A stretch of 64,000 nt of DNA from Blastocladiella emersonii ATCC 22665 (GCA_025594325.1 JANHCV010000004.1:2418001-2482000), one strand, 5' to 3'; counted from the stretch's first letter, positions 29,271 to 37,019 are shown. Numbers and translations: made by a program. The notes: generated from the letters alone by a model not told the origin.

Positions 29271-29817
29271 AGCCAGCGACGCGACGTTCAAGTCCGCGTG
29301 ACCGCGAAGCACGCGCTGACCTGCTCCCGCCCATGCTGGCGACTTAAAGAGTGGCAGCTGCAGTAGAGCCATGCACAGGCGACCGCGCGGAACAACGAAC
29401 GAGACGCCTGTTCACTCGAGCGGCCCTGGCGCGAGGAAGCGAGTACGCTTCGGTTGCAACTGAAGAGAGCTTGACAGGCTTCACGAGCAGTCAAGCGAAG
29501 CCGAGATCAAGGACGCGGCGAGCATGAGGCCGAATCGTTGATAGCCGCTTTCGCGTCAAGGAGGAGGAGATCAGTCGCTGACAAGAGAGTTTTTAGAAGC
29601 GCGGTTTTTATCTCAACTCGATCCTCGAGCGGGGACAAGGCGGTCGAGGAGAACGGCGCAAGAGGAGAAAGGAGGGAGAGGAAAGAGCAAGGCAAAGAAG
29701 TTCAACGAGAAGGAGGGGAAAGGAGACAGGGGGGACGAGAAAAGCAAACGACGAGGGGGGAAGAAGCACATCGCGGTATCAGCGATGGAGGCAGAGGGTG
29801 GTGACGGGCGGGAGGGC

Positions 29818-31347
29818 TTAGTGGCAGCCGTCGCCGTAGTAGCCCGACTCGTAGCCGTGGCCGCTGTCGCCGTAGTACCCGGACGAGTAGTCGTTGCCGC
29901 TGTCGCCGTAGTAGCCCGAGTCGTAGCCCTTCGAGTCGTCGCCGTAGTACCCGGAGTCGTAGCCCTTCGAGTCGTCACCGTAGTAGCCCGAGTCGTAGCC
30001 CTTGGAATCGTCGCCGTAGTAGCCCGAATCGTAGCCCTTCGAGTCGTCACCGTAGTAGCCCGAGTCGTAGCCCTTGGAATCGTCGCCGTAGTAGCCCGAG
30101 TCGTAGCCCTTCGAGTCATCACCGTAGTAGCCCGAGTCGTAGCCCTTGGAATCGTCGCCGTAGTAGCCCGAGTCGTAGCCCTTCGAGTCGTCGCCGTAGT
30201 AGCCCGAGTCGTAGCCCTTCGAGTCGTCACCGTAGTACCCGGAGTCGTAGCCCTTGGAATCGTCGCCGTAGTAGCCCGAATCGTAGCCCTTCGAGTCGTC
30301 ACCGTAGTAGCCCGAGTCGTAGCCCTTGGAATCGTCGCCGTAGTAGCCCGAGTCGTAGCCCTTGGAATCGTCACCGTAGTAGCCCGAGTCGTAGCCCTTG
30401 GAGTCGTCACCGTAGTAGCCCGAATCGTAGCCCTTGGAATCGTCACCGTAGTAGCCCAAGTCGTAGCCCTTGGAATCGTCACCGTAGTAGCCCGAATCGT
30501 AGCCCTTCGAGTCGTCGCCGTAGTAGCCCGAGTCGTAGCCCTTCGAGTCGTCGCCGTAGTAGCCGGAATCGTAGCCCTTCGAGTCGTCGCCGTAGTAGCC
30601 CGAGTCGTAGCCCTTCGAGTCGTCACCGTAGTAGCCCGAGTCGTAGCCCTTGGAATCGTCGCCGTAGTAGCCCGAGTCGTAGCCCTTGGAATCGTCACCG
30701 TAGTAGCCCGAGTCGTAGCCCTTGGAGTCGTCACCGTAGTAGCCCGAATCGTAGCCCTTGGAATCGTCACCGTAGTAGCCCAAGTCGTAGCCCTTGGAAT
30801 CGTCACCGTAGTAGCCCGAATCGTAGCCCTTCGAGTCGTCGCCATAGTAGCCCGAGTCGTAGCCCTTGGAGTCGTCGCCGTAGTAGCCGGAATCGTAGCC
30901 CTTCGAGTCGTCGCCATAGTAGCCCGAGTCGTAGGAGCCGTACGAGTCATCACCGTAGTAGCCCGAGTCGTAGGAGCCGTACGAATCGTCGCCATAGTAG
31001 CCCGAGTCGTAGCCCTTCGAGTCGTCACCGTAGTAGCCCGAATCGTAGCCCTTCGAGTCGTCACCGTAGTAGCCCGAATCGTAGCCCTTCGAGTCGTCGC
31101 CGTAGTAACCGGAGTCGTAGCCGCCGTACGAATCGTCACCGTAGTAGCCCGAGTCGTAGGAGCCGTACGAATCGTCGCCATAGTAGCCCGAGTCGTAGCC
31201 CTTGGAGTCGTCGCCGTAGTAGCCGGAATCGTAGCCCTTCGAGTCGTCGCCATAGTAGCCCGAGTCGTAGGAGCCGTACGAGTCATCACCGTAGTAGCCC
31301 GAGTCGTAGCCGCCGTACGAGTCGTCGCCGTAGCCGTAGCCAGTCAT
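29818..31347 (-). CDS. Gly/Tyr/Asp-rich tandem-repeat protein, (GYYGDDSKGYDS)n, 509 aa, function unknown
   Basis: ATG at 31347 follows a pyrimidine-rich leader and an upstream TATA-like element. About 41 units; substitutions between 12-aa units are almost all synonymous in this frame. Confidence 0.85.
   Translation of the reverse strand: MTGYGYGDDSYGGYDSGYYGDDSYGSYDSGYYGDDSKGYDSGYYGDDSKGYDSGYYGDDSYGSYDSGYYGDDSYGGYDSGYYGDDSKGYDSGYYGDDSKGYDSGYYGDDSKGYDSGYYGDDSYGSYDSGYYGDDSYGSYDSGYYGDDSKGYDSGYYGDDSKGYDSGYYGDDSKGYDSGYYGDDSKGYDLGYYGDDSKGYDSGYYGDDSKGYDSGYYGDDSKGYDSGYYGDDSKGYDSGYYGDDSKGYDSGYYGDDSKGYDSGYYGDDSKGYDSGYYGDDSKGYDSGYYGDDSKGYDLGYYGDDSKGYDSGYYGDDSKGYDSGYYGDDSKGYDSGYYGDDSKGYDSGYYGDDSKGYDSGYYGDDSKGYDSGYYGDDSKGYDSGYYGDDSKGYDSGYYGDDSKGYDSGYYGDDSKGYDSGYYGDDSKGYDSGYYGDDSKGYDSGYYGDDSKGYDSGYYGDDSKGYDSGYYGDDSKGYDSGYYGDSGNDYSSGYYGDSGHGYESGYYGDGCH
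29860..31335. repeat. 36-bp (with some 39-bp) coding minisatellite, about 41 copies, with a 324-bp higher-order duplication
   Basis: Unit approximately gtagtagcccgagtcgtagcccttcgagtcgtcgcc. The diagnostic 'cccaag' variant recurs at 30458 and 30782 (324 bp = 9 units). Confidence 0.97.
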
Positions 31348-31494
31348 GGTGAAGGAGGGGGTGGGTGGTGGGGAGAGGAGGGGAGGCTGTGCGACCGAAG
31401 GCGCAGGCGGAGTGTGCAAGGGTGCAAGGGAGGGGAGAGAGGACTGGGTTGTGCTCGCTGTCGAATCGAGAGGGAGGGATGCGGGGCGGCGGCC

Positions 31495-31506
31495 GGTATT
31501 TATCGG
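31495..31506 (-). promoter_or_regulatory. TATA-like element CCGATAAATACC upstream of the Tyr-rich repeat gene
   Basis: About 150 nt upstream of the ATG at 31347. The same 12-mer occurs at 49091-49102, upstream of lipase 1. Confidence 0.45.
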
Positions 31507-32290
31507 CGGGCCGGGTCGAGGGCGGGGACGGCGAGGGCGGAGGCGGCGAGCAGCGAGTGGCGGCAGTCGGCCACGCGCGCGGCTCGAGATCCAGCGAGGA
31601 AGGCGGCGAGAAGGACGCGGAGCGCGACGTGAAGCTAGCGCGTAGATCCACTTCCGCAGCCACGGTGAGCGGCCGCGGTGCGCAGCTTGCCTCCTTTGCC
31701 GATCGATGGCGGATCCCGTCGGCGTCGTGACGGCGCAGCTTGGCTCCCGGTCGGCGCGGCGCCTAGCTCCGTGCGCCAGCTGGCGTATGGAGCTAGACGC
31801 CACCTCCCCGAAGCGTCGGCAGGGGCACGCGGCGCGATCTCGACGCCAGCGCGAGACGCTGCGCTAGGTCCAGTTGCCACGCTCGCGAGGCGTCGGGACG
31901 TCGACATGAGGGCAGGCTCAACTTTCGCGGAGCTATGCGTGGCGGCGGCGCGCTGCGCGTTGCATCCAGTTGCTTTCCATTTGCTTGCATCCGCGTCGGC
32001 AGGGACCCGTGGGAAGGGGAGGCGTGTGCGCAAAGTGGCCGGGAGGGAAAGTTGTCTCGCGGCTCGTGTTTCATCTGCGAGCGCTGGTCACGCCTTTTCG
32101 CGACGCGTCCTCACACGCGCGAGAGGCGATCGAGAGACGCGAACTGCGTCCCGATCGTGGAAAACGGCCGAGAGTGGCGAGTTGAGAGCAAAACAGATGT
32201 TATATACACTAGGCTCGAACGATACATATACTTACACAACCGAAACCCACTCGATTCTGAGCGCCCACACGCGCTCCCTCCATCCCCTCC

Positions 32291-33994
32291 TCAGATCAGC
32301 GCCGCCACGGCCACGAACACGGCGTCGGGGGCGGGCGCAATCAGGGGCATCTCGACGCGGCCGAAGAACTCGACCGCCATGGCCACGTTCTTGGCGTACG
32401 ACCCCTTGACAGTCGACACCTCGGCCGTGCACAGCGTCGCCAGCACGGGCGCGACGAGCGGCACCATGCGGGGCGTGCAGTTGGCCGACGTCGCGGCCAT
32501 CATCTTGTTCTCCATGAGCATCTTGATGCCCTTGGTCTTGTCGCACACGTTGTTGAGCGCCAGGATGCGCTTCAGCGCGCGGCGCTCGTGCGGCGCCATC
32601 GTGAACGCCTTGTCGGCGCCGATGAACTCGAGCGCGAGGCTGATTGCGTTCAGCGTTGAGAAGTCCGAGTTCGACCGGAGGCAGTGCTAGTGACGCGCGC
32701 ACGTCGAGTGTTAGTGGGTGATCGCGGTCGACGACGAGATGAGGTGAGAGAAACGTACCTCGGCCACCCGGATCCATTTCTGGACGACCGCATCGTCCAG
32801 CGACGCGGCGCCCTTGACCGACAGCTTGACCAGGTTGTAGACCCCGGTGTGCACCGTGGTCTTGTTCTTCTCCTCGAGCACCTTGGCCACCGCGGACCCG
32901 AGCACCTTGGGGTCGGCCGACTCGACGCCGCGAGCGGCCGCGCGGACCTTGTCGACGGTCTTGACGAGCTCGGACGCGGCGAGCGCGGTCAGCGCCTTGG
33001 CGAGGTCGCGCGACGGGACCTCGAGCACGAGGCGGGCGGCCTCGGCGCCCGCCGACGCGTCGCCCTGGTCGAGACCGTCGGCGCGCGTGACGATGCCCGC
33101 GACCTTGTTGAAGGCGAAGCGAGCGGCGCGACGCAGCTTCGAGTCCTTGGGCGTCTTGAGCGGCTTGGCCTGCTTGCCAGCCGGGGTGATGGGGGTCGAG
33201 ATCTTGACAGCGGCGGTGTCGATCTCGAGGTGCAGCTGCTGCTCGGGGACCGTGAGCGGGACGACGGGGGTCTGTGGGATACGAGAGGAGGGTGTGTGAG
33301 CATGACTGAACATGAAGGAAAAGGAAGTCATCGAGTCGAGAGAACGTACCCCAGACAAGCTGAGCAGCGACGCCGAGGCGCGGAGGCACTTGAAGGGTGC
33401 CGCGAGCGCATCGACGACCTTGCCAGCGAACTTGTTGAAGATCGACAGGGGCTTGGAGGTCGAGGTGGCGGCCGCCGAGGGCGCGGGCACGAGGTGCTCC
33501 TGCGAGCCCGAGTCGGCGACGGCGAGGTCGGCCGCCAGGTGCTCGACCGCGTCCTCGTGAGAGTCAGCGGGAGCAAGGTCGGCGGCCGCGGGGGTGGTGG
33601 GGGTGGTCTCGGTCGTGGCGAGGGCCGACACCGAGTCGATCGAGGACGCCGAGATGAGCGACGCGGTCTCGGGCGCCGATACGAGCGGCGCGGCCTCGGG
33701 AGCCGATACGAGCGGCGCAGCCTCGATCGCCGACACGAGCGGCGCGATCTCGAGCGCGGGCACGAGCGGCGCGGCCTCGAGCGCGGGCACGAGCGGTGCG
33801 GGCTCGAGCTCGGACGTCTCGACGGCAATGATGCCCGTGGCCGGTTGGCCGACGGGGACGTACTGGATCTCTGGCATGCCCATGACGCGGTTCATCTCGA
33901 ACCAGTCGCGCATCTCGAGGACATGCCCGGAGAGGAAGAGGTGAGCGTCGCGGGTGAACCAGGTTGGAACGGGGTCTTGACCGTGGGCGGCCAT
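32291..33994 (-). CDS. 517-aa protein: unique N-terminus with 9-aa repeats and a degenerate RasGEF(CDC25)-like C-terminus; exons 33994-33350, 33271-32759, 32686-32291
   Basis: Two phase-0 GT..AG introns give an intact frame. VQKWIRVAEHCLRSNSDFSTLNAISLAL resembles the RasGEF SCR motif, and VPLVAPVLATL resembles the PCVPFLG.YL.DL region. Confidence 0.65.
33645..33806 (-). repeat. 27-bp coding tandem repeat, 6 units (E[AP]APLV[PS]A[LIP])
   Basis: EPAPLVPAL/EAAPLVPAL/EIAPLVSAI/EAAPLVSAP/EAAPLVSAP/ETASLISAS. Confidence 0.85.
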
Positions 33995-36479
33995 GGTGAA
34001 GACGTTGCGCGGTTGGTCGAACGACGACTACACAAGGAGGCCGAGAGATGGACATCATGAGTGGTTGCCGCTCGACTAATCAAGCACAAAACGCGTAGCG
34101 TAACCGTGGGGGAAGACGCGCGGTTAGTCGAAACGACGACTACACGGGGAGGTCGAGGGTCAGTCGCTGTGAGTCGGCGCCGCTCTTCGACTCGAGCGCG
34201 CAGCGCGTACCGTAACCGTGCGGGAGGGAGGCAGGAGCGAAGACGACGGACTGGCCTGGGGCGAGGCTGGTCGGTCGGGGGTGCTTGCAGGAAGCGCAGA
34301 AGTGGCGGTGCCGAGGGTGCTGGGCCGTAGAAGTCGAGCCGTGGACGAGCGTCAAGACGATGACGACGAGGTGGTTCGTCGGCGGCGAAGGCGAGCTTGA
34401 ACGGGAGCAGGTGGGCAGAGCCGGGTGCGCTGGATGCAGGCAAGTTGGGGTGTAACAACACTTGAAGCGTTGCGCCTGGAAATCCGTCGAGTCGATGCGG
34501 GTCGTGTTAACGAGGGTGCAAATGGCTGGCGGATGAGGAACATGGGAGAGCGGGGTTGGCGGGGTTGCGGGCAGTCATTTTGTACTGCGGGCAGTGTGTA
34601 GGGCTAGTGAGCGAGGTGAAGTCGAGGATTCGCGGTCGGTCACGACGACTGACTGACCGGCGAACGAGCGCGATGGTCAGCCGAGCGCCGCGCACCTGAC
34701 CTGGAATGACCCTCGCTTTCACGGCTCGGCCGAAGCGAAAGCGGGTGATGCAGGAGGCTGAGCCGAAAGCGTGATGTCTCGCACCTCGGCACCGCCACGC
34801 GACGCGTAGCTGTTGCAGCAGAGCGCGGTGATCGGCCACGCCGCGGGATCAGCGAGCCGAGATCGCTGGTGCCCGCGCACCGTCACGATAGAGCTTCCTC
34901 CAGCGGGTTAATCTTCATCTCAGCGGTGCTTCATGCCCGCATCTCTGACGAAGTCGGCGAGAGAGCAAAAGACCCGATGCGCGGGCCCGCGCACGCCGTC
35001 GATCGTGCGGCCACTGGTCGAGCTGAGCGCGGAAGCATGGTCACCGATGGATAAGCTGCTCTCTCGCGCTCTCTCGCGCTCTCTCGCAACAGATACGGTC
35101 ATAGGTCACCTGCAAGGCTTCCCCGTCGAGCGGCAGCTTGGCGGCGGGGAAGCGTGCACGAGCGCGAGTGTATGAGCGAGGGAGCGAGCGGGGGAGGGTC
35201 CAAGACCCATCGTGGGGCAATCGTGAGGATAGTCTCGGCAAGGGAAGGAGCAGGCGCGGCCGTGTGTAGCAGGAGAGGCAATGCGGTACCATAAGGTACG
35301 AGAGAGGAGGGGTGACCCGGCGCGGGGTACGAGTGAGGCGGTGGAGGGAGGGAAGCGCGCGACGAGGGCCTCGAGAACACCGATCCGTCATAGTTTCAGC
35401 AAGTGTTGACGAGGAAGATACATGGGAGCGCGCGGATCGGGTCAGTGCGTGTGTCGAGGGAAGCGGGAAGAGCGCGTCGGTCATACCGCGTGATGTGGCG
35501 CCGCCGCCGACCCCACGCTGCCCGGGCAACGCGTGCGTGCGCCGACGCGTGGGAGCCCACGTCAGGGGAACCGACCGCCCCCGTGGCGCAGCCGCCCTTG
35601 ACCGCCGTCCCCACCACCAGCAACGACTCACGGTACACAGAGCGCGAGCGGTAAGCGCGGTGTCCCGCGGGAGAAGACCGATCGCGCGACGCACCCCGTC
35701 CAGCCTTAAGCGCAAGACGACGCGCTGTCCGACTTATCGCATCCAGTACTAATTTCGGTAGAGACGGGTTTCGAGAGCTCAGGTCAGTCGAGGCGGGCGA
35801 CGCGGCGAGCGGTAGTAGCCGTGAGGGTAGTGACGCGCGGGCCGCGCGGCCGGGGCGCAAGGTGACCGACCTCGCTGCACAGACCGCCCTTCATCGTCTC
35901 ACTGCACATCGGACTCTCTCGCGTGTCAATCGAGGCTGCCGAGGCGGCCGAAACGGCGAGCGCCGGTAGCAGTGAGGGCGGGGACGCGCGCGGCCAGCAT
36001 GGTCGCCTCACGCCCATCACCGACCTCGAGCCCGCCCTCCTGCGCCTTCTTACACATCGAGATCGCATGCGCATGACGTTGCCGCACCTCGCCCATGCCG
36101 CGCGCGAGTGTCGCGACCGTTACGAGCGATCCAGCTGGCGTGGGAAGAGCTGTGATCGCGAAACTGATCATGTCGGGCTGCACGACGTTGCGGCGGTGCC
36201 CCGGGCGTCAGGGCCTCGGCGGGGTCGCGGGCAGTTGATTGCATGAAGCTACGAGTACGATTCATTTGAGTGGTGGAGTTGCGTTGGTGTAGGTGGAGAG
36301 CGGGGATGGGTTCCGTGCCACCTCGCCGACTTAGCCAACGCGTCGCGGTGGCCGCTCGCCAATCTTGCAGGCCTCCCCCTTCGACGCCGCGACCAAGGGA
36401 CCTGCAGAAAATTTCTCTTAAGATGCTTACATTGCTACGAAGCCCAAAAACCGGACCCTAGCCTCCGATCTCACACCCA

Positions 36480-37019
36480 TCTCGCTCAGCTCCACATCGC
36501 CTCGCGCATGCGCGACCTTCGCTCTTGGCGAGCAGGCACTGCGCGACTCGCTGGTTGGCGTCGGGCAGCACGTCGAGGAGTACCGCGACCGCGGCGACCA
36601 CATCGCCCGCGCGGCCAACCTCGAGACGCGCGCCGTACGTGTTCATGGGATGGGTACGAGCGGGTCCGCGGGCTCGCGCGGCCAGTGCTTGAGCAGGCAC
36701 GCGGGCACGCTCGGTACGCGGTCCCCGCGGCGTCGTACCGGTTGCGGTCTATGCGCTCGTGAAGCTCCGTGACGGTGTCGGCGTCGATGGGCACGCGGAA
36801 GATGCCCTCAGCGGCGAGGCCGCCGAGCTCCAGCACCGCCTGGCGCAGGGACATAAGGGTGCGCGGGTACTCGAGTCGCTGGCGGCGCATGGTCTCGTCG
36901 AGCGTGTCGCCGAACACGGACGGCGAGTAGGGCGCTTCAATCATGAGCTCAAGCTCGGGGAGCGACAGCGGGGTGCCGTGCGGCCCGCGGCTGTGGGCCT
37001 CACGCAGCCTCGCGAACAT
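36480..37019 (-). pseudogene. Frameshifted RhoGAP fragment (ARHGAP39/MyTH4-RhoGAP-like)
   Basis: Frame 1: EAPYSPSVFGDTLDETM..LGGLAAEGIFRVP. Frame 2: VPACLLKHWPREPADPLVP*. Frame 3: VAVLLDVLPDANQRVAQCLL. Confidence 0.75.

Follow-up and report, generated by a model that had tools for sequence, protein, structure and literature searches.

A tandem-repeat protein gene rich in tyrosine, glycine and aspartate and its paralogues in Blastocladiella emersonii

The trematode eggshell proteins p48, p14 and p19 consist of Tyr/Gly-rich tandem repeats that also contain Asp and Lys, and these precursors are produced in bulk and secreted from vitelline droplets. The low-complexity domains of the FET (FUS-like) proteins have Tyr residues spaced by Gly and Ser, following a 'sticker and spacer' logic, and the short-coil beta-solenoids include the Tenebrio antifreeze protein (1ezg), MpAFP (3p4g) and the RTX proteins, whose Ca2+ beta-roll nonapeptide has the consensus GGxGxDxUx. 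The Schistosoma mansoni eggshell precursor p48 contains 26% Tyr and 15% Gly and is cross-linked by tyrosinase (PMC3499410), and the hydrophilins are characterized by more than 6% Gly and a hydrophilicity index greater than 1 (PMC11277543). Here we describe GY, a gene encoding a repeat protein that shares features with each of these groups, within a stretch of 64,000 nucleotides (nt) of the fungus Blastocladiella emersonii ATCC 22665 (GCA_025594325.1, JANHCV010000004.1:2418001-2482000), referred to below as the window. GY belongs to a family of at least seven copies that is new here and is so far known from B. emersonii only, and we are highly confident that both the gene and the family are real and under selection.

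The GY gene and described repeat proteins

The coding sequence lies on the minus strand of the window, whose coordinates are those of the JANHCV010000004.1 record minus 2,418,000:

29818..31347, minus strand: GY gene coding sequence, 509 amino acids (aa), 41 Tyr/Gly/Asp units, start MTGYGYGDDS, end GYYGDGCH and stop codon

The open reading frame (ORF) runs from 31347 to 29818 (1530 nt, giving 509 aa and a TAA codon), and Tandem Repeats Finder resolves the array into 41.3 copies of a 36-nt period with 88% matches. The protein opens with MTGYGYGDDSYGGYDS and continues into repeat units, 41 of which start with GYYGD. Canonical units number 38, comprising 33 of the Lys type (GYYGDDSKGYD[S/L]) and five 13-residue units (GYYGDDSYG[S/G]YDS) that are all located in the 5' third of the array, and the last part consists of three variant tail units with the terminus GYYGDGCH. 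The composition is 25.7% Tyr, 25.5% Gly, 23.8% Asp, 16.7% Ser and 6.5% Lys, in a protein of 55 kDa with a net charge of about -89, a Kyte-Doolittle grand average of hydropathy (GRAVY) of -1.66 and a predicted isoelectric point near 4. Arg is absent, which leaves the protein without dibasic sites; neither a hydrophobic stretch nor a signal peptide is present at the N-terminus, and there is no in-frame ATG upstream. An initial annotation, made from the sequence alone, had described a 509-aa repeat ORF with 38 canonical units, a variant tail ending in GYYGDGCH, no signal peptide and no dibasic Kex2 site, and this description is accurate in each detail checked. The protein is less new than that annotation assumed: the gene is already annotated in NCBI assembly GCA_025594325.1 as a single exon with a 509-aa product, and it is present in at least seven copies. 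The assembly was produced from PacBio HiFi reads with Illumina polishing and was annotated with funannotate (PMC9730499); such HiFi reads should be long enough to span the 1.5-kb array.

In composition GY falls within both hydrophilin thresholds (25.5% Gly, GRAVY -1.66), and like the hydrophilins and LEA-like proteins it is leaderless and probably disordered, although it contains no LEA or hydrophilin sequence motif or Pfam match and its 26% Tyr is atypical of that group. The eggshell proteins are metazoan and secreted, whereas GY has no signal peptide and is far more acidic, and no similarity of GY to eggshell or adhesive families was detected in Pfam and PDB sequence searches. An appeal in the initial annotation to [G/S]Y[G/S] motifs of the FET type is weak: the 509 aa include only eight of them, and the dominant Lys-type unit, which has GYYG and GYD instead, lacks them entirely; the FET domains are near-neutral and Gln-rich whereas GY is strongly acidic (net -89), free-standing and without RNA-binding domains. 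The GY repeats are rich in Gly and Asp, like Ca2+-binding turns. Unlike the short-coil beta-solenoids, GY has no disulfide ladders or secretion signal, and a solenoid is seen in only one of five structural models; the RTX motif GGxGxD has no match in any of the seven GY proteins. A further counterpart is the 431-aa JGI metagenome protein P0002, which has acidic repeats of the GY[W/Y]GD.GYDS type (63% identity over 16% of the query) but differs from GY in having a signal peptide, a domain outside the repeats and, at the C-terminus, a membrane anchor, and which is probably a prokaryotic, convergent extracellular analogue. In P0002 the repeat form that follows the signal peptide is GY[W/Y]GDAGYDS.

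Database searches with the window GY protein returned little. A Pfam scan identified no family, and a PDB sequence match to pyridoxal kinase (E = 1.8e-4) was rejected as a spurious consequence of low complexity. A protein homology search with the whole protein matched P0002 and the fungal protein P0001 only, the latter being the sole fungal match and the subject of a section below, and a search with its C-terminal 265 aa alone matched nothing. A phmmer search against 1.84 billion representatives gave 147 matches; the six that were inspected, five of them among the best nine, are unrelated repeat proteins with a shared periodicity and composition, and were discarded. In exact look-ups, the GY proteins of the window and of the paralogous loci L004, L005 and L009 were missing from a 15-billion-protein collection even though they are called genes, so that the empty homology searches say nothing about other fungi. 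The best score in an ESM Atlas feature search was 0.74, with low recognition, and provided no lead; Rfam and tRNA scans of the window found nothing; a look for sequencing runs listed no RNA run for the locus and, with the neighboring SRP68 gene, just three DNA runs of the source sample; JGI metagenome contigs gave no matches to two degenerate DNA patterns (for the Lys-type unit and for YDSGYYGDDS); and nothing relevant was found in the literature on the motif, on Blastocladiella Tyr-rich proteins, on melanin and resistant sporangia, or on Blastocladiella RNA-seq.

Paralogues and selection on the repeat unit

The window GY gene lies downstream of a RasGEF-like gene, here called X, and eight members of the X family were found in the B. 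emersonii genome, with all matches coming from B. emersonii only. Seven of the eight X loci, the window included, have a GY gene 780-1045 bp farther downstream in the same orientation as X, the two genes making up a cassette. ORF lengths in the GY family range from 101 to 509 codons, and the window copy is the longest:

Window, contig 4: GY ORF of 509 aa, C-terminus GYYGDGCH
L009, contig 6: GY ORF of 339 aa, C-terminus GYYGDGCH
L005, contig 9: GY ORF of 289 aa, C-terminus GYYGDGCH
L008, contig 1: GY ORF of 243 aa, C-terminus GYYGDGCH
L001, contig 9: GY ORF of 162 codons with TAG at codon 10, C-terminus GYYGDGCS
L006, contig 6: GY ORF of 115 aa, C-terminus GYYGDGCC
L004, contig 2: GY ORF of 101 aa, C-terminus GYYGDGCC

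The N-terminus is MTGYGYG.DS at all loci but L001, where it is MSGYGYGGD followed by the stop codon, and a signal peptide or hydrophobic N-terminal region is absent in all seven copies. The B. emersonii GY family can be defined by an MTGYGYG start, GYYGD units, a GYYGDGC[H/C/S] end, a TATA/5' untranslated region (UTR) block and an upstream X gene, a definition that the window copy fits. The short members contain only 0-2% Lys. Cys occupies the penultimate or the last two positions in every member (as GCH, GCC or GCS), and the conservation of this terminal residue in the predicted proteins suggests lipidation, disulfide formation or cross-linking. The copies at L008 (L008:8248-8979) and L009 (L009:8280-9299) have in common an unusual unit of 15 residues that contains an internal Cys, GYYGDDCGKDSGYDS. 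The L001 copy is a candidate recent pseudogene. The eighth locus, L007 on contig JANHCV010000002.1, carries X paralogue P0156 and is without a GY ORF, its GY partner having been lost; similarity to the window cassette ends about 90 bp past the X stop codon (L007:10044-10150).

The distribution of nucleotide differences among the units argues that the peptide has been selected. The 33 Lys-type units of the window represent 19 distinct nucleotide versions that vary at 9 of 36 positions, and eight of these nine are third-codon positions at which the changes are silent in the GY frame, as the initial annotation had observed in noting that differences among units are almost all synonymous. The sole non-synonymous change, Ser to Leu, is found in two units, both of which are part of a duplicated block. 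Given about 7.3 synonymous sites among the 36, this split between silent and replacement changes has a binomial p of 2.2e-5 and corresponds to an omega-like ratio of 0.03. Variable C sites at third positions number 7/9, compared with 0/9 for variable G sites at first or second positions (Fisher p = 0.002), and this asymmetry argues against a simple deamination bias. The codon usage and GC content at third positions (0.89) of the window GY gene agree with those of neighboring genes. In all of the paralogues the Lys-type units differ at third positions only, with a conservative Asp/Glu exchange as the sole residue change; unit lengths range from 12 to 19 residues but always in whole codons, all insertions and deletions being multiples of 3; and the consensus unit codons are identical between loci whose X last exons differ by a dN (non-synonymous divergence) of 0.24-0.27 and a dS (synonymous divergence) of 0.30-0.37.

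These patterns have to be set against the possibility that GY has no protein function, and is either a GC-rich minisatellite that is open by chance or a young or decaying ORF, with the uniformity of the array due solely to unequal crossing-over and gene conversion. The array is indeed open in five of six frames, there is clear recombination between loci together with higher-order duplication, and one paralogue has a nonsense codon. However, these differences alter amino acids when read in any of the other four open frames, the variation at all loci is confined to third positions of one frame, and this extends to recent variants, with those at low frequency among the window Lys-type units being silent in four of five cases. 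The exclusive occurrence of indels in multiples of 3 and the retention of start, end and promoter while the last exon of the neighboring gene diverged to ~62% identity also speak against this interpretation, and we consider it very improbable. The initial annotation's view of a selected protein rather than neutral satellite DNA is thus strongly supported, with six further loci keeping the frame, start and end. It had also pointed to frameshifts and stops in relatives as evidence that would count the other way; no frameshifting unit length occurs in the paralogues, whereas a stop does, in the form of the in-frame TAG at codon 10 of the L001 copy.

Transcription unit, neighboring gene and recombination

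Upstream of the GY coding sequence the window contains the following features:

31348..31510, minus strand: conserved core promoter and 5' UTR, near-invariant in seven paralogues
31491-31506, minus strand: TATA-like GATAAATACC, ~145 nt upstream of the GY ATG
31511..32290, minus strand: spacer from X to the GY promoter, including a probable X 3' UTR, 89-95% identical to L001
32291..33994, minus strand: X gene, RasGEF-like, three exons, ending in ...AVAALI and a stop codon, with its own ATG at 33994

Alignment of the 300 nt upstream of the seven GY ATGs reveals a block of ~110 nt, extending from the TATA-like element through a pyrimidine-rich leader to CACCATG, that is near-invariant in all seven copies. 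Its upstream edge is sharp, in that the distant L008 and L009 align poorly with the others beyond it, and the window, L005 and L008 share 52 nt of the block without a single difference. The TATA-like motif occurs once in the window, compared with 0.01 occurrences expected by chance. Between the window and L001, identity is 92-96% in the promoter and 5' UTR, 71-79% in the X introns and 80% in a RhoGAP relic, and the spacer (89-95%) is likewise more conserved than the X introns. Conservation of the promoter block could result from selection or from gene conversion, and we do not favor either. Within the probable X 3' UTR, a 100-bp segment (31950-32049) is 100% identical to L001, at a divergence where neutral-looking sequence is only 71-80% identical.

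A different gene structure is proposed by the NCBI model H9P43_007063 (P0001, 630 aa; L001:7697-8780, JANHCV010000009.1), which joins X to the repeat via a 1084-bp intron and would make the array the last exon of X and the repeat its C-terminal tail; in the window, too, the phase would be kept by splicing from a donor that follows ...VFVA to a 'cacag' acceptor located 39 nt upstream of the ATG. At L001, however, the AG that the model takes as its acceptor belongs to the in-frame TAG that forms codon 10 of the GY ORF, and the donor of the model (GTGGCG) does not resemble GTACGT, the donor of both genuine X introns. The 'cacag' sequence, the only plausible in-phase acceptor before the ATG, is deleted in L008 and L009, every copy retains an ATG of its own, within CACCATG and ~145 nt downstream of the conserved TATA-like element, and the other six GY copies are annotated as separate genes. 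We infer from the TATA/5' UTR block, the lack of a conserved acceptor and the separate gene calls at six loci that GY is its own transcription unit rather than a 3' exon of X, and that the fused structure has only a slim chance of being correct; H9P43_007063 probably reflects an error of annotation at a nonsense mutation.

The X gene of the window contains introns at ~33348-33272 and 32757-32687, and Pfam PF00617 (RasGEF) is at or just below threshold in all five X paralogues tested. The X last exon evolves fast (omega 0.18-0.78) beside the constant GY unit. We note that gene model P0151 (659 aa; window 32291-36995, equivalent to L003:2329-7057) seems to combine X with a degraded fragment of a RhoGAP sequence, its residues 62-96 having a Pfam RhoGAP match with E = 0.003.

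Two further features of the window, one within the array and the other beyond its 3' end, bear on the history of the gene:

30281..30843, minus strand: 324-bp (9-unit) internal duplication, from autocorrelation, with the longest exact run at lag 324
29575..29817, minus strand: 3' UTR, near-identical to L009 and unrelated to L001, L004, L005 and L006

The two copies of the 324-bp duplication have an exact 239-nt run in common (30605-30843 and 30281-30519). On its 5' side, comprising X, the spacer, the promoter and the first units, the window groups with L005, L001 and L004, and it is 97.7% identical to L005 across 435 bp reaching into the array. The last units, the 3' UTR and 1.1 kb downstream match L009 (91.9%) and L008 only, with BLASTN aligning window 29896-28824 to L009 at 91.9% over 1.1 kb. 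Since the 5' side is L005-like and the 3' side L009-like, the window GY gene is a recombinant with a crossover inside the array; painting of the array with 40-mers from the paralogues located no sharp crossover point. This recombinant origin may be the reason why the window copy is the longest. Source DNA contigs from three DNA runs are fragmented and none extends across the whole array; their word depth is about twofold on the shared flanks (~240-260 versus ~130, for example at 29625-29786), and loose ends and a 'skips 81' joint among them correspond to other paralogues. Concerted evolution is clearly active among the GY arrays. The family grows and shrinks as units are amplified and as arrays at different loci recombine, and selection keeps the repeated peptide, the start and the end with its Cys unchanged.

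Possible functions and significance

Our best overall explanation, to which we assign a probability of roughly 0.4, is that GY is an intact family gene whose product behaves as a cation-responsive polymer with Tyr 'stickers'. The product would be a cytosolic, largely disordered polyanion of ~55 kDa, synthesized in bursts when development reaches a certain stage, or in response to a stress, under control of the conserved TATA promoter. The three Tyr per 12 residues would provide the cohesive contacts of a multivalent 'sticker and spacer' polymer, and the three Asp per unit would keep it soluble and expanded until their charge is neutralized by dehydration or by counter-ions such as Ca2+, Mg2+, polyamines and basic proteins, whereupon it would condense as a coacervate or gel, or as an ordered stack resembling a beta-solenoid. 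This mode of action is a guess drawn from composition, topology and promoter type only, and we hold it tentatively, judging it less likely than not to be right. The hydrophilin-like composition agrees with a role in the protection or buffering of spores or resistant sporangia.

Structure prediction offers a lead to the ordered state. AlphaFold2, run without an alignment on the 509-aa protein and on the 339-aa paralogue, produced for each one model out of five that is a regular solenoid of 12-residue turns, at a predicted local distance difference test score (pLDDT) of 70-80 for the former and up to ~90 for the latter. In VIA-align comparisons the top ranks for the solenoid model are generic short-coil beta-solenoids with Z-scores of 7-14, among them the beetle antifreeze protein 1ezg, which has a 12-residue coil (2.6 A over 82/82 residues), and the Ca2+-dependent antifreeze protein 3p4g (Z 10). 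An extended version of the proposal is that GY is a new eukaryotic cytosolic cation-switchable polymer, a disordered polyanion at resting Ca2+ that would convert, as Ca2+ or other counter-ions rise (for example during zoospore encystment or sporulation), to a gel or to a beta-solenoid with Tyr ladders and 12-residue turns, with the RasGEF-like protein as its partner in a mobile two-gene module; we regard this as speculative and improbable.

Several observations weigh against the polymer explanation. Four of the five AlphaFold2 models are unstructured for both proteins (pLDDT about 25-33), Foldseek searches of both models against the PDB found nothing significant, and the Z-scores among repeat folds may reflect only a common arrangement, leaving the predicted solenoid as a lead. 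Individual GY copies are dispensable, one paralogue having a premature stop. The uniformity of the units, moreover, could owe much to concerted evolution and to strong codon bias besides selection, although concerted evolution tempers the selection argument without removing it, because the low-frequency variants are also silent (4/5).

Other functions can be envisaged for a protein of this composition. GY might be a structural precursor whose Tyr residues are oxidized by a tyrosinase or peroxidase to DOPA-quinone or dityrosine, with bonds to Lys, Cys or Tyr hardening the cyst wall, the resistant-sporangium wall or a discharge plug. Its composition resembles that of S. mansoni p48 (PMC3499410), each expanded unit offers one Lys and every copy a conserved Cys near its end, and array length is variable, as in material proteins; against this, signal peptides and hydrophobic segments are missing from all seven copies, the short family members are nearly free of Lys (0-2%), and no homology to eggshell or adhesive families was found. 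The absence of a signal peptide from seven copies argues in particular against a secreted wall role, and disfavors the wall or adhesive reading put forward in the initial annotation, so that we judge the cross-linked precursor to be unlikely. Alternatively, the extreme Tyr content, the abundance of solubilizing Asp and a number of gene copies suited to bulk production would be in keeping with a soluble Tyr reserve degraded on demand, for example for melanin, and the regular Lys spacing of the expanded unit with a precursor cut after Lys into GYDSGYYGDDSK peptides. There is, however, no dibasic or other recognized processing site and no secretory signal, the short paralogues are without Lys, and no fungal precedent was found in the literature, all of which makes a reserve or peptide precursor highly improbable. 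The cation-responsive polymer remains the explanation that we prefer.

Blastocladiella emersonii serves as a model organism in studies of zoospores and of phototaxis in fungi, and yet its genome contains an unnamed seven-copy family of proteins with 25% Tyr and 24% Asp whose promoter is among the most conserved at these loci. The analysis exposes a probable artefact of annotation, in which a fusion model was spliced across a stop codon, and reveals a blind spot in that the large protein collections searched are without the low-complexity GY proteins. If GY proves to be abundant at one life stage, the family would provide a simple natural system for the assembly of aromatic-sticker, acidic-spacer polymers triggered by cations or dehydration, and would show how repeat arrays can be kept under peptide-level selection while recombining between chromosomes.

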